From assembly GCA_038496445.1 (NCBI GenBank), contig JALMLS010000093.1, positions 1-64,000 on the forward strand: 64,000 nucleotides of DNA, written 5' to 3'. Under the pieces are notes generated by a model, which saw only the letters and a program-made list of their open reading frames with translations, did no database searches and was not told where the DNA came from. This document shows, in pieces, positions 19,378-61,236 of this stretch (within the stretch, counting starts at the first letter, position 1; the number at the start of each line of letters is the position of its first letter). This DNA is from Trichosphaerium sp. ATCC 40318. Taxonomy: Eukaryota; Protista; Tubulinea. A program made the translations under genes and the position numbers.

Positions 19378-20969
19378 ATGAGTGAGTCAAAGGTATCAGA
19401 ACCAGTAAAAGGGAAAGTAGCCATTATAGGCAGTGGGCTTATTGGCAGCAGTTGGGCAATCGTATGGGGGAACGCTTACACTGTATACGCTTAGAATAAG
19501 CTAGGTTTGGGCCCGTGCTGGGTACTCTGTTTGTTTGTTTGACACTTTTAAAGAAGCGCTACCAAAAGCGCTTGAAAAGATTAAGGAGAAGCTAGATACG
19601 CTATCAAAGAACTCTTTGCTTAAAGGTTGACGCGATTAAAAGGGTTTTTAGTTGTGAACTGATTTAATAACGTCTTTTCTTTTAGGTAACGCTCCTGAGG
19701 ATGTTTTGAAGCGTATAACGACATGTGAATCGATTGAAGAAGCCACAAAGAATACAATACTCGTGCAGGCAAGTAAATACGCTCAAACGCGTACAAATGA
19801 CTTACGAGTACGGTAGGAGTGTATTCCAGAGAAAATTGAGTTAAAAAAACAGTTATTCGGCCAACTTGACAAACTAGTGTCAAAAGATACTGTACGACCT
19901 TTGTTTATTACCGAGCAGCCATTTTACCTCTCTTTACTTTGAATTGACGTTTGTTGATGTTGTTCTACAGATTCTTGGCAGCTCGACGTCTGGCATCCCA
20001 GCTTCTCAATTTACAGAAGAATTGGAAGGCAGAAGTCGTTGTATTGTTGTTCACCCTGTTAACCCTCCAGAAGTCATCCCACTCGTTGGTACGTATAATA
20101 GGTATCCTATCAATGTGATTAATGGTTTAATAGAGCTTGTACCTTCTCCTTGGACTGATCCTAAGGTCTTAGAGAAAAGTAAGGCTTTGATGGAAGAAAT
20201 CGGTCAAGTCCCTGTCATTTTGAGAAAAGAAGTTAACGGATTTGTTCAGCCTAGGTACGCTTTTTTACTCCAGTTGTCGCTGCTATTATTTATTTATATT
20301 ATTGTGCGCTGTTTAACATGTATTTTAGATTACAGTACGCCATCATGGCTGAGATTTTCAGGCACGAATGATGTTTAACAAATGATTAAGGTGTCAAACT
20401 TGTCTTTTTTTTTTAACGGTTTGTTAGGCTTATTGAGGATAATGTACTTTCTCCTGAAGATATTGATAAGACTGTGATTTATGGTTTATGCCAAAGATGG
20501 TCGTTCTTGGGTGTTGTAGGAACATTGGATCTAAATGCACCAAAAGGTAAACAACTCGAATTTCTCTTACTTTTTTTTTTTTGATATTTTTTTTGATGAC
20601 GTTTTTGAAGGTGTTACTGATTATTGTGATCGCTACATGGGCAATATGTACCGTTGTGTTGATGAAATGGATAACTCGCGAAAATTTGATTCTACCACTT
20701 ACAAGAAAATGGATGAGTCTATGAGGAAGCAATGGAAAGTAGAAGACATACCAAAGGTAATAACATTAAAAAAACCTTCAACAAAAAGTTCTTTTTTTTG
20801 TTCAAGTTCTTGAACGACGTTTTTTGTGCTTCTCTTCCTCTTGTTTTTATACAATATATAGATGTGGGAATGGAGAAATAAGCGCCTTATGGCATATGCA
20901 AGACATTTGGAGGAAGATCGTAAGATTGACGAGGAGTACAAAAAGTACTTTGGAGAAGGGAAAATGTAG
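19378..20969 (+). CDS. CRYL1: Lambda-crystallin / L-gulonate 3-dehydrogenase (3-hydroxyacyl-CoA dehydrogenase family)
   Basis: KVAIIGSGLIGSSWA Rossmann motif, VQECIPE, ILGSSTS, VHPVNPP..IPLVELVP, KEVNGFV..RLQYAI. Confidence 0.9.
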
Positions 20970-21811
20970 TTGTATAACCTGCACTTTTTTGCCTGTGTAG
21001 GCATCAACAATGGGCTGTGTAGTTTTAAAAGCCCAATTATCTAATCACCATATATCATCTTTATTTAAATAAAGTTATTTTTATCACGTGACGTAGGATT
21101 GGCTTTCTATTGCCATATCCAGTTCATTCTAGCTATTGTGCATGCTGAATAAGGTACTTTCATCAGTTAAGTAAAATATCGGCTGCTCTACAACTTACGT
21201 ATACGTATGTATCAGAATAAAGCACTCAAAGATGTACATGGCACTTGATGGAACATTTTGAAAAGTGGCTTAACGTAGACAATACATTTAACAGACGGCA
21301 GTTCCTAACAGATGAGGAATCAAATCACATACTAATACCAACTCTTATCACATGGTTTTCAATAGTAAGCAAAGGGTTGAAACTCTGTATTTGCGGTAAT
21401 GCCAAGATGAAGGTTTGAAAACCTGGTAAATCTGTAGGAGCTTAGTTATCTATTCTCATACTAACAATAACTAAAGATTGCTTAAAACTCCTTGCCTAAA
21501 AAGGTTTTTTTTGGCAAATACAGCCTTACTGACGAGGATGTTGCTGAACATTCCACAACTCCATTTTTATTTCGTACATACTTTAGCGAGTGAAAGCGTT
21601 TACAGTGACTGTACCAGCCACTTGGTTTTTTCTTTCAACAACGGAACTCGCCTAGTACAATAAGCCAATAAAATTATTAATTAAATAACTTTTTTTATTT
21701 GTCGTTGTTGCACATTGCTCATTTTTTGCACCTAGGAGCAAAAAAAACGTTAAAACGCTTATTTAATCGCTCATCTAAATTACTAAGTGTACTAGCTGAA
21801 AAAATAATAAA

Positions 21812-22146
21812 TCTGTTTGATACACGTTTTGCGAAACAAAACGTCAGCGTAACGGTTTTCATACGTTAGATAGGTTGCACAAGGCTTTGTTGGCGTTTTT
21901 AGATGTGCATTATCCATATTTGAGTATTTTAAGTGGATATTTAAGTGAATTGTATCGACAATACAACCAGAAAACAGAAGTTATCGTTTGGTAGCATGTT
22001 TTGCGAACCAAAACATCGCCAATAAGGTTTCCATGCGTGTAAATAGCCATCACAAGCCTTTGTGAGCGTTTTGAAATGTGCATTATCCATTTTTGAAGTA
22101 TTAAAATAGAATTTTCAGTGAAGTGTATCCCACAATTTATTTCTGG
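21812..22146 (+). repeat. Two tandem ~173-bp units upstream of ncRNA-A (shared with 59203-59539)
   Basis: atgtgcattatccat recurs at 21903 and 22076 (period 173). A long block (tatccatatttgagtattt.aagtggatattt.agtgaa.tgtatcgacaatacaaccagaaaacagaagttatcg) is nearly identical to the 59.3 kb copy. Confidence 0.9.
22128..22135 (+). promoter_or_regulatory. DUSE/USE-like element TCCCACAA, 64 nt upstream of ncRNA-A
   Basis: Near-identical motif and the same spacing as the element before U6. Confidence 0.7.
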
Positions 22147-22191
22147 ACAGAATCTTGGTGTACAAAAGTAAAAAAAAATGTATTATCAAAT

Positions 22192-22440
22192 GAGACGGCG
22201 AGTGGTCTCCGCCAATTACCTACTACTTATTCACACTGGGGTAGGTCGGACTTTATTCCAGAGGTCTGGGGATGACTTCCCGGACAGGCATTCATTGGGC
22301 TGTTACCTTGAGTCAGGGTATTTAATCGGTATAGTAAAATTGTAAATCCAGATGCAGCACGTTCTAGGGTAGAACTAAAACCAACGATACGTCAAAGTAA
22401 GGGCTTCCGTGACACCGAAGTAATCCGCCTTGCTTTTTTT
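22192..22440 (+). ncRNA. Unassigned structured ~250-nt Pol III-type RNA, copy A
   Basis: USE at -64, GC-richer structured body, T7 terminator; helices covary with the copy at 59582-59839. Confidence 0.75.
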
Positions 22441-22460: not shown

Positions 22461-23666
22461 ATGGTATTCCGTTTGTTGGATAAGTCGAGAGACTTCAGTT
22501 TTTTCAACTTGAGCTGTTTGTGCAGTTGCATAGAATTACTTTTTTTTTGTTACACTGTGTACTACTTTTTGTTCCGGAAGTCTTATCTATCACCACACTT
22601 TTATCAAAGCCGAATTGAAAAGATTCTTGCCCTACTTTCAACGACAGAGTGGCTTGCGTACTTACTCTACGCGCAATAAGAGCTCACAGTAAGTATTGGG
22701 GTAGTTTCAGGTAAATACCATTTGGACGAACCGCTTTCTTTACCACCAAAAAAAAATGATTTTGGTACGCTAGGAGTAGGCCTAGACGATGCAAACTACT
22801 ACAAATGTAAACAAAGTACTTATATAATTTAGAAATTATCACATAGGTGGAAAAGGACAAAGTGCGAAGACCTGCGTATATTTGGCACACAGGTACATGT
22901 TACTTTTTTTTGAACCCAACCTGTTGGTTTTAACTAAGGTTTTTAAAGGCAATAGGAGCATAACGTATATAGCACAGATGCCTGCCAAGTTTGTTAATTA
23001 CCTGGTAACAAAGATGCTGTTTAAAGCATCCCACCCTGATTTTTGTTGGTTCACGTGGAACAAGTCTCCAATAATACTCCATGCCGTCCCTGTTGAACAA
23101 TTTAAACACAAGTATTGTTATTGTATGTACTCTGTCTAATATCTTGTCCAGTGACTTGCACCGTTATCTCAAAAGAGTATAAAAAAATGTATCTATCGGA
23201 ATGCTGTCTAAAGCAAGCTCGCCGGCTTGCTAAGATGCCAAACCTTGTTTATAAACAAGGTCTACTGGTAGCGAGCTTTGAAGCAATGCTACATATTGGC
23301 ACTGTGGCACTGTATAGACGAGATGTCTCAATTGAAGACCTGTATAAGAACTTGGTTAGTTTAGAAGAATTTGTAGATAGACATTCGTCTATCGACCTGT
23401 ATATTGCGCCTTTGTTCTTCAGACAAGGTGATACGTTCACTCTTGGTGCTGTGATTGACTCTTCGTTCATGCTTCAAATCTTCAGAGCGAATGCGAAGCA
23501 GGTTATACAATGGAAGAAACGAGACTCCAAGAAAGCCAACTCCAAGAAAAGCAGCTCCAATAACAAAAAGGAAAACAATAACAAGCGGTTTTTGTACTAT
23601 CAGAAAGTATTGGCCAAGATGCACTATGTTTCGGCCACATTCAGTTGTATGATACTAGGTGAATAG
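22461..23666 (+). CDS. Uncharacterised protein with basic C-terminal tail, paralog of 60095-61236; 5' end unresolved and possibly degenerate
   Basis: RRPAYIW / IAQMPAKFVNYLVTKMLFK..DFCWFTW / QARRLAKMPNL / FEAMLHIGTVALY / LGAVIDSSFMLQI align with the 60-61 kb gene. There is a TAA at 22677-22679 in the putative first exon. Confidence 0.65.
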
Positions 23667-24932
23667 CACTTGGATTAATAGGTACAAGCGAAATATTTGC
23701 TCATGACGAGAAAGCCTGTGTAAGTTTAGGATTTGAAATAACACTATTTTTTTTTAGTGCTAAGCCTGATTTTTAGGGGTGGTTTGTGAGCATAGGTAGC
23801 CTTGTGCAACTCTGCAAGCTATAAGATTAGTATTATCGAGTACTTCGGATGAGCATAAAGTCACGTGCGTGCTACAAATCGAGTTGTCTTTTAAAAAGTA
23901 GGCCTAGCGCTAAATACAATAGCGTTATTTCAAGTCAAATCCTTAGTATTTTGTGTCTATCGGAGTTTACAATGGCGCAAATGTACTCTCGAACGAGCAT
24001 GTTTTAAGCTACTGCTGCACGCTACAGCGTTAACATACTTCTATGTAGAGAAAACGCACGCACAGCACCATTCACTAGCTTCTTGTGACATAAGAATCCC
24101 TTTCCGTTTGTACATTGCCTTCACTGTTTTATTCCGCTGTTATTTGTAAACGTTTATTGAGGTTAGCTTCGAGCAAGCCCGCGATCCAGTAGTTTTGTAG
24201 TACATTTTATCGCGTCAACCTCTGCTAATACCTCCGCTCCTAGAGACGATGTTTTACGGACTCCTAACTATTACAACTCAGAACAAACAAAACGGCGTTC
24301 TACAAATTTTTTTGCCCATCTACTCGCCAGTGATAGGAGAAAAACGTCACTTTGAACTGTTTTAATACTAATGTGCTAGAAACGGACTATTTTCAGCAAA
24401 CTTGAACATCACTACAACTCTGAGAAACACGAAACAGATCGCGGACGCGTACATTGATTGTATTAATGTTGACGTACGTATTTACGGCATTCGCGACTGG
24501 TTTGCATAAAAACTGCAAATTCTGCAGGCGAACAGTTTTGTGCATTGAATATACTCATAATATAGCATCGCCAAGTGCCTGCATAAGCTACGATTCTATT
24601 AACGGTATGTGGTCTTTAAAAAAAGAAAAACGAGTGATAACCGTGAAGGTATTCTCACAAAGTTACAGCGGAGACAGTAAAAATCTTCGAAAACTCGTAC
24701 CAACGCCAAACGCTTTGAATTTTCTCGCGGAATTTCTATGAAATCTAATAAAAACTTTCAACCGTTTTTCTCTATTTAGTAACGTATATTGGCGCGATCG
24801 CTTTACATTACGCCGAAAGCAATACTGTTGTTCACTATTGCACCACGTGGTAAACAATTTGTTGACTCTGTAGTGACTTATAGAGAAAAAGTACACAAAG
24901 TCAAAAAAATCATTATTACAAAAACATCACCA

Positions 24933-25262
24933 ATGGAAGCACAACAACAGCGATTCTCAGTATTCAACCTATTCACTAGATCACAACCTACCAGTACATA
25001 CGCTGACTCATCCGACTGTATACCTGAAGCGACCACAGATACACTGCCTGCCAACTCTTTTCAAAGTACGTTTAAATGAATGGCCACATAACCCTTACGC
25101 GGTTTATGGCCTACTTAGTAGTTTACAAATTTTTTTCACTAAATTGTAACTTACACAGGCACATTCCCTAAAAACAACCTGTTCAACCGATCCCTGACAT
25201 GGATGAAGACCAAAAGATACGATAAACACACCGCGGCATCGACTTATGCGCGTTTTCCTTAG
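24933..25262 (+). CDS. Small (~80 aa) two-exon hypothetical protein
   Basis: MEAQQQRFSVFNLF...SFQS joined by a gtacg...cacag intron to TFPKNNLFNRSLTWMKTKRY...ARFP*. Confidence 0.5.
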
Positions 25263-26529
25263 CCTTCTTTACAAAAAGGACTAAGGCACGCATAAAAGAA
25301 CAAAAACCGTAACTTGTACATAGCCACAATACCCCACCCTTCCCCCACCTGTATTATTTCGAGTATATCTCGTTGTACAATAGTTTAAACAAAAAATAAA
25401 ATAAAAATGGCTTGTTAAGAATTCTCGTTGTCGTTTTACTGTTTATGTTGAGTATTACGCTTTGAATGGTTATTTTATGAGCGCCGTTACCGAGTTTTGA
25501 GAGAACGATACCCGTGTTTCGGCTTTGTTTAGTATGTTATCTATTTATTGTTCTACACGCGTGCGCAGTTATTTTAAAGGGTATAAAAGAATATAAAAGA
25601 AACTTGAAACAAATCACAGCTCAACGCTTTTTCCCACTGAGTGTTAAAAGCGATCTAAATAAGGTAATTTAGTATGTTTCGCTGTGTTACGGTGATCGTT
25701 TAAGCTTTTTATAGAAAACAAAGTGATTTATTGACAGCTGCAGTATAGCGGTATTGGGATACCTACATTCTTTGTTTCCCGTGCGTCCAGCGCCATGAAA
25801 TGTTCATCGTTAGAAAATAAACAGAAATTAACGAACTCTTCACAACTTCGCTCGAAAGAGACGTAAGTAGTAAAAGCACACCTATATATGAAGTTTATTT
25901 AGGCATAAGCCGAAGCTGCACTTTCTTTCCACGGCGATTTTTCCGCGATTTCAGAAAGGCAACCTAAAAACCTACTCACCTGCTGAAGAGTTTTCCTTCC
26001 GCGGAATCTTGCCTCTCAATCGTACGATACGATCGCATCCGCCTGTAAAGGAACGTCAACACTGCAAGAATCACGTGATACAATTAAAAACCTGACAACG
26101 TTCGAACAAACAAAGTTGTTACGAAATAGACACGTGCTAATAAACTTTAAATTTCTGTTTGCTCTATTAATTTTTCGAACAAAACTAAGTTCGGGTTAGA
26201 TTTCTCTTTGTAATTGCAGTTGCAGCTCAACAAAATTCGTTGTAGTTGTTCGAAAATATTCTCATGGCGCCATCATATTCAAGCGAGCAAAGTGCGTAGT
26301 TCGTGTTTGGTTGGGCTTTCGCTTGCTCGGAACATTGGTTCGAAAATTTTTCACCCGTTCGAAAAAAAAAACCAACGGTTAGAGTTGTGTACAGTTTATA
26401 TGACAACAGATTTTCCTAATGAGAAGGCACTATGTTGTTATAAATATCAGAAACTAGGTTGTGGTTTTTGTTTTGTGAATAGTTTCCCCGACTTAATTGG
26501 TATACATCCATAATCTACAAATACAAAAA

Positions 26530-56905: not shown

Positions 56906-58925
56906 ATGAAAATCGTTGTAACTACGCCAGAGGGAGACATTTTTAGCGTTGACGTTGATCCTTCAAAAACTGTACGCTGGAATTCGGCTGTTATTTGGCT
57001 AGGATTACGCGCAGTGTATAAGCTAACGTGGTTTTGTAGGTATCTGAAACACAACGGCAAATAGCGACACAAGTACGTATGGTATTACGTTTATCAGTAG
57101 TAACACCATTAAGATTCGAATTGATGCCAATCGACAAAAGTTTACGTGGGAAGGAAGGCAATTGGAAGCTACTAAAACCCTTCAATCATACGGTATTACA
57201 GAAAACGCTGTCATAGCTGTTGATAGGGTGCGTTGTGTTTTTAAACGTTTTAAATTCCTAACATACGTCTCTAGATACCTCAATCCAGCTTCGGTACGCC
57301 TCAAAATAACATAAGCCTACCAGATGACATTCTTGGATCACTTCTTGGTAATCTATCTGGAACAGCTCCACAAGTGCGTCCATATAACTTGTACTGCGTA
57401 GAAAACCATTATTTAATGCATAACTCAGCCATCAACGCCTGTGATACCACCAAATCAAAGCATTTTACCTCCAAACACCAACATCTTGCCGTCAAACACA
57501 AATATCTTACCTACAAACAACAACATGTTACCAAATCAAACACCAACATCTGTTCCTCTCCGAGTTGTTCCTGAAATAATCCGTCCACCAGGTAATAATT
57601 TAAAACCTTCAAAAAGGAGAAAAACAAAAATGACATTGTTTTTTTTTTCTTTTCTTATTTGTTTGTTTTTTAGGTGAACCTAATTCAGTTGTTGATCTCA
57701 AAGTACTTCAAGAATATGTTCGTGCTAACCCTAACTTGCTACAAAGTTTATTACATGTACGTAACAACAAGCCTACACCATATCAAACTGCACTTTTTTT
57801 TTTTCGGTTCAACGAAGTTAAAATTCGATCTATGGCTTCGTATAGTTTGTTTCGCAATTTTTACAACCGCCAGCAAGATTACTTACGTGTACACAGCAAC
57901 ATCCAACAGTAGCAGAGGCAATTCTCTCAGATGATACTATTCTGCTTAGTGGACTCATACAACAAAACTATACCAGACTTGTAGCTGCTAGACAGAGAGA
58001 AAATGCAATATATGTACGCGTAAACTACTCGAATTTGCTTTTTCTTAAAACTTACTTGCTTATTCCTTAGAATCAAATTGCAGCGGATCCACTTAATCCA
58101 GCTAACCAACAGCTCCTCGCTTCAGCCATCCAAAGAGAAAATATAGCAGATAACATGACAAGCGCAATTGAACATAATCCCGAGTCCTTTGGCACTGTTA
58201 TTATGCTCTACATACCAATAGAAATCAATGGAGCGCCTTTACATGCATTTGTAGACTCTGGAGCACAACAAACAATTATATCAGATGCAATGGCCGAAAA
58301 GTGTAATTTAACACGCCTGATAGATACAAGATACGCTGGCGTTGCAAAAGGAGTGGGTACAGCGAAGATTCTCGGACGCGTACACATGGCTAGGATTAAA
58401 ATTGGCAATTCCCACTTTACTACTTCTCTTACAGTTTTACAAGATCAATCTATAGATTTCTTGCTTGGTCTTGATTTTCTCAAGAGGTTTCAGGTACGAA
58501 CTAAGTTGGCCGAAAATTTGTAAAGGCCCTTTACGCGCGGGTTATTTTAAGATGTTATGTTTCGCTTACGTGCTTCTCTTTTAGTGTTGTATAGACTTAA
58601 AGCAAAATGCTCTTTGCGTTGGAGAAGAGAAAGTGACGTTTCTGTGTACGCTGTCATTTTTACAAAACTTTTCTAAAGTTCTCGGTCTGACGACGTTCTA
58701 GCGGAAAAGGATTTACCTGTTAGGCTTAAACAGCATCTACCAAAGGATTTATCGCTATCTACTGACGCAATGGACGTCGATGAAAAGAAATACAAGGAGG
58801 AAGATATTAAAACTTTATTGAACCTTGGATGTAATAGACAACAAGCATTAAGGGCTCTACAACTAGCTGAAGGTAATGTTGAAGTAGCTGCTTCTATAGT
58901 GTACCAACAGATGGCTAAGAAATAG
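56906..58925 (+). CDS. DDI1: DNA-damage-inducible protein 1 (UBL - retroviral-like aspartic protease - UBA)
   Basis: N-terminal UBL; PESFGTVIMLYIPIEING..AFVDSGAQQTI; GVGTAKILGRVH; C-terminal UBA (ALQLAEGNVEVAAS). Confidence 0.96.
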
Positions 58926-59202: not shown

Positions 59203-59539
59203 GTCGTTTGGAAGCACGTTTCGCGAACCAAAACCACGCCAAAACGCTTCTCATACACGAGTATAACCAGAACAACGCTCTGTACGTGTTTTGAAATGTG
59301 CATTATCCATATTTGAGTATTTCAAGTGGATATTTCAGTGAAGTGTATCGACAATACAACCAGAAAACAGAAGTTATCGCTTGGTAACATGTTTTGCAAA
59401 CCAAAACATCACTGGATCGGCTTCCACGTATGTAAATAGCTATCACAAGCCTTTGCGAGCATTTTGAAATGTGCATTATCCATATTTGAGTATTTTAAGT
59501 GGATATTTCAGTGAAGTGTATCCCACAATTTATTTCTGG
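59203..59539 (+). repeat. Two tandem ~173-bp units upstream of ncRNA-B (shared with 21812-22146)
   Basis: atgtgcattatccat at 59296 and 59469 (period 173); near-identical to the 21.8-22.1 kb block. Confidence 0.9.
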
Positions 59540-59560
59540 GAAGAATTACGCTCTATAAAA
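59521..59560 (+). promoter_or_regulatory. DUSE/USE-like TCCCACAA plus TATAAAA box of ncRNA-B
   Basis: TCCCACAA at 59521-59528 and TATAAAA at 59554-59560, a type-3 Pol III promoter layout matching the U6 spacing. Confidence 0.75.
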
Positions 59561-59581
59561 CAAAACGAATTGCAACTTTTA

Positions 59582-59839
59582 GTAGCCTGCGATTCATCAC
59601 GTATAGAGCCTGTTACTATTAATTCAAGGACAGGCAGGACACTTCCAGCAGCTTCGGTTTGATGCCCGAGGCAGCCCTCATAGCAGCTGTTACCTTCGTT
59701 ACGGTACTTGATCTGGTCATCTAAAAGTAATTCCAGATACAGCACTTTCTAGTAGTAGAAAGAAAAGCATGAGACGCCTAGTTAGTATGGACTCTCGTAA
59801 CAAAGGGGTACACTTGCACCGTGCTAATGACTTTTTTTT
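59582..59839 (+). ncRNA. Unassigned structured ~255-nt Pol III-type RNA, copy B
   Basis: USE + TATA upstream, T8 terminator, helices shared with copy A with compensatory substitutions. Confidence 0.75.
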
Positions 59840-60094: not shown

Positions 60095-61236
60095 TTACTT
60101 TTTATTACGAAGTCCTTTGCCTTTATGTTTGTTGTTTTTGTTTCTCTTTGGAGAGCTAAAGTTCTCGCTCTTTTTCCAATTCCCTTCCTTCTTTACAATT
60201 ACTTTCTTCTTCACGCGATAACGTTTCATCCATTGTTTGGATTGTTTTCGATCGGCTTCTAGGATCTCCAGCATGAACGAAGACTCAACAACAACACCAA
60301 GATTGAACGTAAAGTGACCTTCCTTCCTGAAGAAAAAAGGCATTATATTTGGATCACGTGCTGAGTGTTTGATAACGACTTTTTCAAGCTCTAGCAATGT
60401 CTTGAACATATGTTGAATTTCTACATCCTGCTGGAACAGTGCGATTCTACCGATACCAAGCATAGACTCGAAATCAGAAACCAAGAAATCGCCTTTTTTA
60501 GTAAGCGTTGGAGCTCTTGACAAGGCACGGGCCTGAGGCAAAAAACACCATTTGTTGTAAGAAGCTGTCAGCTCAGTTTCATCATCTGAACATTCAAATC
60601 TGTATATCCAAGTATCACCTAGTTTTACGCCTATAGAAAGGTTAGAGTGGTTAAGGCAATGAATGAAAAACAGAAAGGTTAAGCCACGTACGATTGAAGA
60701 GCACAGGAGGTACAAAGGCATTTAGTCTGAAGCCGTTGACGTCTAGGAATTGCGGTAACTGCCAATAGAACCAGCAGTCATCACCGTTAGGTATCTTTAA
60801 CATCAGCCTGGTGATAAAATATTCGATGAACTTGGGAGGGACTTGAGAAATCGAACGAATAAGTAAGTGTCCTAAAATAGAATTATCGCATATATTCGGT
60901 TGTTCTAGCAAAAAAAAAAGTTTGTACGTACTCACAGGCCAGCAATGAGCAGGTCTGGTTACGTCGCCGGTACCCCAGATTCGAACACGAATGCCTAAGT
61001 AGTAGTGATTAGCTAGCGTTCTCGTAGTAGAGGTTAAAGTACTTACGTTGCTCGTTTCCTTTTTCGATAGGTAATTCTTCGTTGATAGTTTCGTTTAGTA
61101 GCTTGCATACTTGACCAGCGAAAGCTCTTACGTTCAAAAACCGAAGAAGGTAAACTAGGACAGTTCTTGGCATGCCCAAGAGGCTGTATTGCTGATAGTG
61201 GCGTTCAATAATCGGTCTCTTCTGTTTAGAGAGCAT
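60095..61236 (-). CDS. F-box protein with uncharacterised C-terminal domain and Lys-rich tail; paralog of 22461-23666
   Basis: SLLGMPRTVLVYLLRFLNV...VCKLL fits the F-box consensus; the downstream exons align with the 22.9-23.6 kb gene. Confidence 0.8.

Follow-up and report, generated by a model that had tools for sequence, protein, structure and literature searches.

In Dictyostelium, many non-coding RNA genes, including those of spliceosomal RNAs, are preceded at a distance of about 63 bp by the Dictyostelium upstream sequence element (DUSE), with the consensus [AT]CCCA[AT]AA (PMC3188802; PMC7919456). [quoted passage not shown] The Class I RNAs are 42–65 nt long and combine a short stem formed by their 5' and 3' termini with an unpaired 11-nt motif of the CCUUACAGCAA type (PMC7919456; PMC3188802); none has been found outside Dictyostelia (PMC7919456). 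In the 64-kb stretch of DNA analysed here (the window), which comes from another amoeba, a DUSE-like element precedes two segments of similar size and shared fold, both on the + strand: copy A at 22192..22440 (~249 nt including the U tail) and copy B at 59582..59839 (~258 nt). We consider it likely that they are two paralogous genes for a structured non-coding RNA of ~250 nt, with an external DUSE-type promoter, Pol III as the likely enzyme, and a putative role as a ribonucleoprotein scaffold.

The initial annotation had both segments starting 61–64 nt after TCCCACAA and ending in T7 or T8, and all of these coordinates and motifs were found as described. The element lies at 22128..22135 (+) for copy A, 64 nt before the inferred RNA start, and at 59521..59528 (+) for copy B, 61 nt before the inferred start. 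The T7 run at 22434–22440 (+) is the inferred Pol III terminator of copy A, and the T8 run at 59832–59839 (+) forms the 3' end of copy B. A covariance model built from copies A and B themselves (R1) scored them at 276 and 286 bits, respectively, and its filtered search of the 64-kb window recovered only these two. The RNA bodies are 62% identical (MAFFT; 151 of 243 aligned columns) and differ by 92 substitutions, and BLASTN self-comparison returned no alignment between them. The ~43–45% identity of the neighbouring protein paralogs agrees with the earlier view that the pair is too different for a recent duplication. The fully conserved blocks are GGAC..UUCCAG, GCUGUUACCUU, GGUA, and GUAA-N-UCCAGAU-R-CAGCAC-N-UUCUAG.

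The promoter region of both copies resembles that of a recognised non-coding RNA gene in the same window. The U6 snRNA gene at 13029–13136 (+; Rfam 104.8 bits, E 3e-26; 12966..13136 with its promoter) carries TACCACAA at 12966–12973, that is at −63, and TTTTAAATAT at about −29. Measured from the inferred starts, TCCCACAA agrees with the DUSE-type motif and distance except at position 6, where it has a C outside the consensus [AT]. What had been called a USE promoter is therefore retained as an element at the distance described, as at U6, under the better name of Dictyostelium upstream sequence element. The motif and its distance, common to both copies and the in-window U6, are the strongest argument that A and B are independent non-coding RNA genes. 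Downstream of the element, copy A has an A-rich TATA-like box, GTAAAAAAAAATG, at 22168..22180 (+; ~24 to 12 nt before the start at 22192), and copy B has TATAAAAC at 59555..59562 (+; about −28). The A-run of copy A makes a poor box, poorer than that of copy B, and we infer from the sequence that these A/T-rich boxes act as TATA boxes. The box at −28 in copy B, the A-run at about −24 in copy A, the T7/T8 ends and the lack of an internal T4 together correspond to a Pol III type-3-like layout; no U run of at least four occurs inside the body of either copy. Because a U6-like external promoter is combined with an oligo-T end, Pol III is the likely enzyme, and the TATA-like box and oligo-T end would likewise suit Pol III transcription. 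The oligo-T terminator alone is weak evidence, since runs of at least seven T occur on the + strand of the window at 1.3 per kb.

Five other WCCCAYAA sites occur in the window (2120, 7933, 12035, 32573 and 56530), a number that chance predicts, and they were rejected as RNA promoters, as neither a TATA box nor an RNA-like unit follows any of them. A TTGGTGT heptamer lies exactly 27 nt after the start of the DUSE-like element in U6 (12993–12999) and in copy A (22155–22161) and is absent from copy B; it could mark a further promoter element or have arisen by chance.

Every helix listed in the initial annotation was found in both copies. Among the 45 base pairs of the curated helices, 31 are identical between A and B, six have one-sided changes that still pair, eight are compensatory, and none is broken; the RNAalifold consensus contains 44 shared pairs, eight of them with two-sided changes. 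From 5' to 3', the RNA is built of a leader of ~26 nt that is poorly conserved between the copies, helix H1, the GGAC..UUCCAG linker, helix H2, a three-way junction, helix H5, an A-rich linker, helix H6, and the U tail. In copy A, H1 (22218..22246, +) is formed by seven pairs, ACCUACU/GGUAGGU, around a 15-nt loop, and three of the seven are compensatory with respect to GCCUGUU/GACAGGC in copy B (59608–59635, +). H2 of copy A pairs GUCUGGGGA with UUCCCGGAC (22264..22285, +; 59651–59672, +, in copy B) and shows two compensatory and two one-sided changes among seven aligned pairs. H5, with the six pairs GUUCUA/UAGAAC in copy A (22361..22375, +; copy B, 59745–59762, +), has one compensatory change, G-C against U-A. 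The 3' extended hairpin H6 (22397..22433, +; copy B, 59785–59824, +) has GUAAGG/CCUUGC enclosing GCUUC/GAAGU and the loop CGUGACACC in copy A; its 11 pairs include two compensatory and three one-sided changes, and its consensus is GUAWGG/CCKUGC around a 5-bp stem with the loop CGURACA.

Conservation within the RNA is highest in the three-way junction, which is kept as sequence rather than by covariation. In copy A (22299..22358, +; copy B, 59686–59743, +) it consists of a GCUGU/GCAGC stem, a 4-bp UACC/GGUA hairpin, and an AUC-GG/CCAGAU hairpin; the consensus of both copies is GCUGU/RCAGC, UACC/GGUA and AUC(U)GG/CCAGAU. Thus, the shape of H1, H2, H5 and H6 is maintained through compensatory changes, and the junction and linkers are maintained as sequence. 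A scan for extra pairings showed that the H6 loop could also pair with the 4-bp hairpin of the junction, whose loop is complementary to it (GUCA/UGAC in copy A, GUUAC/GUAAC in copy B), with one C-G to U-A covariation. The H6 loop may dock on the junction hairpin loop, a hypothesis built on this single covariation.

The shared fold exceeds what the alignment would give by chance. Its consensus energy was −44.55 kcal/mol, compared with −16.1 ± 3.8 kcal/mol after shuffling of the A/B alignment columns within conservation classes, and 0 of 500 shuffled alignments were as good. The structure conservation index SCI, the ratio of the consensus energy to the mean energy of the single sequences, was 0.67, compared with 0.25 ± 0.06 in the column-shuffled alignments. 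A stricter null held one copy and the conserved columns fixed and permuted the 92 substitutions of the other copy among the same columns; it gave −24.6 ± 4.6 and −22.8 ± 4.2 kcal/mol, one value per fixed copy, with 0 of 300 permutations as good in each. Because this null failed to reproduce the fold in either direction, the placement of the substitutions is compensatory and is not explained by sequence similarity alone. The reverse strand folds worse (−27.85 kcal/mol, SCI 0.44), and the preference for the + strand agrees with the G-U pairs and with the orientation of promoter and terminator. The folding energies of the single sequences are ordinary (z −0.18 and −0.61 for the two copies), and the signal is a conserved fold, not unusual stability. 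The claim of structural selection is accordingly supported by both the column-shuffling and the substitution-permutation tests. The covariation evidence comes from two genomic copies, and R-scape needs more sequences.

Both RNA copies have an intron-containing orphan protein gene as a neighbour, 250–450 nt from the respective copy. The gene by copy A has exons at 22882–23666 (+), and the one by copy B has exons at 60095–60935 (−) in a gene reaching to 61428. Their products are paralogs of ~43–45% identity in which no Pfam domain and no database homologue were found, and the exact product is on record in none of the databases searched. The N-terminal exon of the gene by copy B has no counterpart near copy A. 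As the neighbouring paralogs have diverged so far, the duplication of the RNA module must be old, and an RNA fold that stays intact over an old duplication implies purifying selection. Among the conserved neighbours, a gene for an aspartyl protease of the DDI1 type, with a UBA tail (58071–58922, +), lies just upstream of the module of copy B, and a 3-hydroxyacyl-CoA dehydrogenase/lambda-crystallin-like gene (19878–21230, +), assigned by eye, lies upstream of that of copy A.

Expression was checked at copy A only, where four public runs contain parts of the surrounding 5-kb stretch. Three of them, X1, X2 and X3, were treated as RNA because their contigs are spliced at the GT..AG introns of neighbouring genes. 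Run X2 includes a 205-nt contig of depth 2.7 at 22209–22413, wholly within copy A, from which transcript ends, strand and abundance are not readable. This piece is the sole non-mRNA contig of X2 in the 5-kb stretch, and no X2 contig covers the repeated units upstream of copy A or the 1.3 kb downstream of it. Six of its 205 positions do not match copy A (97% identity). Of the five differences listed, A22284>G replaces a U-A pair in H2 by U-G, three are located within the H5 loop or beside it (one of them at the loop-closing pair), and one falls in a linker. None of these five touches the invariant junction. The neighbouring exons differ by 0–0.5% in the runs, and the contig may represent a close third paralog or an ortholog of another strain that evolves faster. 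On this one low-depth contig from an RNA-like run, the RNA gene pair is probably expressed.

Two further features appeared in the same runs. A 3466-nt contig of X2 has a same-sense match of 21 of 22 nt to 22336–22357 (AAAAUUGUAAAUCCAGAUGCAG), the most conserved stretch of the RNA, without further extension, and a loose end of X3 at 22336 suggests the same 3466-nt contig there; the match could be due to chance or to a fragment of another family member. A small spliced gene at 24926–25411 (+), with a GT..AG intron at 25066–25158, is very highly expressed, with a contig depth of up to ~1400 in X1; its product is a short protein of about 78 aa, likewise an orphan.

The proximity of an orphan-family gene to each copy, at 250–450 nt, raises the question of whether A and B are cis-acting leaders or regulatory RNAs of that gene and not independent genes. 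Locus A would suit such an arrangement, with the RNA upstream of the orphan gene on the same strand. At locus B, however, the protein gene lies on the opposite strand and is convergent with the RNA. The RNA also ends in a T7 or T8 run, and within the stretch around copy A the RNA-like runs have a contig on the RNA and none on the protein gene. We therefore regard a cis-acting element as very improbable and continue to treat A and B as independent RNA genes.

The DNA immediately upstream of both RNA genes is itself repeated. Two tandem units of ~173 bp were found by self-BLAST at 21790..22129 (+) before copy A and at 59204..59522 (+) before copy B. Within locus A, 21790–21956 matches 21962–22129 at 75% identity, and between the loci, 21823–22153 matches 59215–59546 at 83% identity over 333 bp; an alignment of the four units has a mean column identity of 81%. 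The upstream units are therefore more similar between loci than the RNA bodies are (83% vs 62%). Only the proximal units carry TCCCACAA, and the distal ones have a degenerate TCGACAA; the blocks AAATGTGCATTATCCAT and CAGTGAAGTGTATC are invariant in all four. The U6 gene has no such tandem units. As candidate RNA genes the 173-bp units were rejected, with a consensus fold of only −12.5 kcal/mol and no net covariation support.

Each unit also contains a palindrome, AYGTTTTG-5 nt-CAAAACRT (21823–21845, 21995–22017, 59219–59240 and 59388–59410), in which ATG/CAT is swapped for ACG/CGT between units and which could be the site of a dimeric factor or a hairpin. The AAATGTG of the units is identical to the 'TGTG box' of Dictyostelium, but it is located here ~55 nt upstream of the DUSE-like element and not downstream of it. 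In the RNA-like runs X1 and X3, contigs match only 22066–22116 of the proximal unit and continue into unrelated flanking DNA that the window does not contain. From these foreign flanks it follows that diverged copies of the unit exist outside the window; such copies elsewhere in the genome may be transcribed.

Conservation of the upstream units can be read as a large constrained promoter or enhancer, as gene conversion, or as a dispersed repeat. It is the main support for the idea that A and B belong to a dispersed repeat or mobile module that is transcribed incidentally and has no cellular function. A module of ~650 bp begins at GTACTAG in both loci, the 83% identity of the units stands between unrelated flanks, the X1 and X3 contigs carry diverged units from loci outside the window, and the module adjoins a paralogous orphan gene at both loci in opposite relative orientation. 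Nevertheless, all 45 of 45 pairs are preserved, 14 of them despite changes, in bodies that have diverged at 38% of their positions, which would not happen in a repeat undergoing decay; the covariance model finds just two copies in 64 kb; and the promoter geometry equals that of U6. Overall, a functionless repeat appears unlikely to us, and selected RNA genes account better for the preserved pairing.

Homologues were sought outside the genome itself through metagenome, viral, neighbour-protein and synteny searches, and none was found. A metagenome scan with a two-block core pattern gave four loci in bacterial coding or unrelated eukaryotic DNA, and a viral contig scan with a 19-nt core gave 65 loci from one phage gene family that contains the 19-mer by chance; neither set had a match to R1, and both were dismissed as chance matches. 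In a set of 5.8 billion proteins, the best relatives of the DDI1-type protease are only 60% identical. With relatives of at most 60% identity, the lineage is isolated in the collections, and synteny is unusable.

The two bodies were compared with the 4227 families of Rfam release 15 by cmscan, first at gathering thresholds and then, for both strands and with lax filters, at E values up to 10. At gathering scores, no family was found in body A or body B, and U6 was the sole match of the window. At E up to 10 on both strands, neither RNA body had a match; the lax matches were chance snoRNA-like ones only, located in the promoter region, and were set aside. The check proposed in the initial annotation thus yielded no known family for either body down to E 10. 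Its remark that diagnostic motifs of known RNAs are missing also proved correct in checks for telomerase RNA, C/D and H/ACA RNAs, Sm sites, 7SK and RNase MRP/P. No permutation of CCCTAA that could serve as a telomerase template occurs in copy A or B, and the 5' regions able to hold a template are not conserved between the copies. Neither copy has the UGAUGA, CUGA or terminal ACA of box C/D and H/ACA snoRNAs (including U3), and neither has an Sm site (RAU3-6GR). The paired GAUC motif of 7SK is absent, with no GAUC in copy A and one in copy B. With the CR-I and CR-V motif definitions applied to RNase MRP/P, neither copy has a GAAAGUC-type CR-I, a CR-V partner or a long-range P4 helix. A loose GNAANUC match (GUAAAUC in one copy, GUAAUUC in the other) occurs at homologous positions and pairs locally in a hairpin. 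Complementarity to U6 was also considered and was not better than in shuffles.

A and B might nonetheless be very diverged members of a known Pol III-type class, namely RNase MRP, 7SK, U3, SRP RNA or telomerase RNA. Genes of plant MRP, U3 and telomerase RNA and of vertebrate 7SK and MRP have the layout of external promoter, TATA box and oligo-T end, and the two copies match it at ~250 nt. The three-way junction with its conserved 4-bp hairpin recalls the CR4/5 of telomerase RNA, the GUAAAUC and GUAAUUC stretches fit a loose GNAANUC at homologous positions, and extreme divergence is plausible because the closest DDI1 is only 60% identical. The tests above speak against this class by class. All 4227 Rfam families are blank at E up to 10 on both strands. 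Telomerase RNA is disfavoured by the lack of any CCCTAA permutation and by possible template regions that differ between the copies, and UGAUGA, CUGA, an Sm site and repeated GAUC are all missing. The GNAANUC-like stretch sits in a local hairpin and not in a long-range P4, and the junction hairpins lack the long helix and the GNRA/GNAR loop of SRP helices 6 and 8. Moreover, an essential RNA of the single-copy kind would rarely have two such dissimilar paralogs. A diverged known RNA is in our judgement doubtful, and the two genes appear to belong to no described family and to be restricted to their lineage.

The proposal of an undescribed multi-copy non-coding RNA family is therefore supported: no Rfam family was matched and the fold is selected, with 'multi-copy' amounting to two genomic copies plus one transcript variant of 97% identity. 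Several lines of evidence indicate that A and B probably form a real, selected, lineage-specific structured RNA family, probably made by Pol III. For now, the gene pair is better described as a well-founded candidate than as a discovery.

A mechanism can be proposed for how such an RNA would be made and used. Each copy would be transcribed from its own external promoter, in which the DUSE-like TCCCACAA precedes the start by ~63 nt and an A/T box follows near −29. Transcription would end at the oligo-T run, with Pol III as the likely enzyme. The transcript would be a chain of hairpins with an invariant junction, working as a stable ribonucleoprotein scaffold. Its U tail and 3' hairpin would bind La or a La-related protein, the invariant junction would provide a specific protein- or RNA-binding platform, and a contact may form between the loops of the 3' hairpin and of the 4-bp hairpin in the junction. 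Our best guess is that the RNA is a protein-binding scaffold. We lean slightly towards a broader view in which it represents an undescribed class of ~250-nt Pol III ribonucleoprotein RNAs of an isolated amoeba lineage, with a junction core and a loop-loop contact, among several orphan DUSE-driven families that would form a regulatory layer.

In eukaryotes it is uncommon for a structured RNA of such length to show clear compensatory evolution and yet have no family assignment, and those already known, 7SK, MRP, vault, Y and telomerase RNA, each proved to be the organiser of an important ribonucleoprotein. The DUSE-type promoter had so far been described in dictyostelids; here it marks non-coding RNA genes including U6 in another amoeba, and it offers a practical handle for finding the whole non-coding RNA set of this organism.

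Comparison with known systems places the pair closest to other externally promoted small RNA genes. The in-window U6 shares with A and B the element at −63, the A/T box near −29 and the oligo-T end, but has no similarity to them in RNA sequence or structure and no significant complementarity. 7SK, to our knowledge known only from animals, is transcribed by Pol III from an external promoter; its few hundred nucleotides fold into successive hairpins, and the hairpin at the 3' end forms a La/LARP7-type binding site together with the U tail. It is like A and B in external promoter, size, hairpin chain and 3' hairpin with U tail; it differs in that neither 7SK nor Arthropod_7SK of Rfam gave a match and that the paired GAUC is missing. 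Plant RNase MRP genes are Pol III genes of the USE+TATA type that occur in a few diverged copies. RNase MRP resembles A and B in size, in promoter type and, in some lineages, in its diverged paralogs, whereas A and B have no Rfam match, no CR-I, CR-V or P4, and no conserved GARAR loop. Telomerase RNA is of the Pol III type in plants and ciliates. It is comparable in promoter and terminator type, and the junction with a sequence-conserved 4-bp hairpin recalls CR4/5, but A and B contain no CCCTAA template, and their candidate single-stranded regions differ between the copies.

The closest parallel in gene organisation is with the Class I and Class II RNAs of Dictyostelium. These and the present pair have in common a DUSE ~60–63 nt upstream and an oligo-T run after the gene; diverged paralogs that are restricted to a lineage and have no defined molecular function; and helices whose structure is kept while their sequence is not, next to an invariant sequence block (PMC7919456, PMC3188802). 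The UACAGCA of copy B is part of the Class I CCUUACAGC motif, but it is base-paired in copy B, and copy A has GCAGC where copy B has ACAGC. A and B were consequently rejected as Class I RNAs: the heptamer occurs only in copy B, where it is paired, and the 249 and 258 nt of the two copies, with seven helices and a three-way junction, stand against 42–65 nt and one stem. If the proposal is true, this amoeba would have an RNA regulatory layer comparable to that of the social-amoeba Class I RNAs, but built of much larger, multi-helix RNAs.
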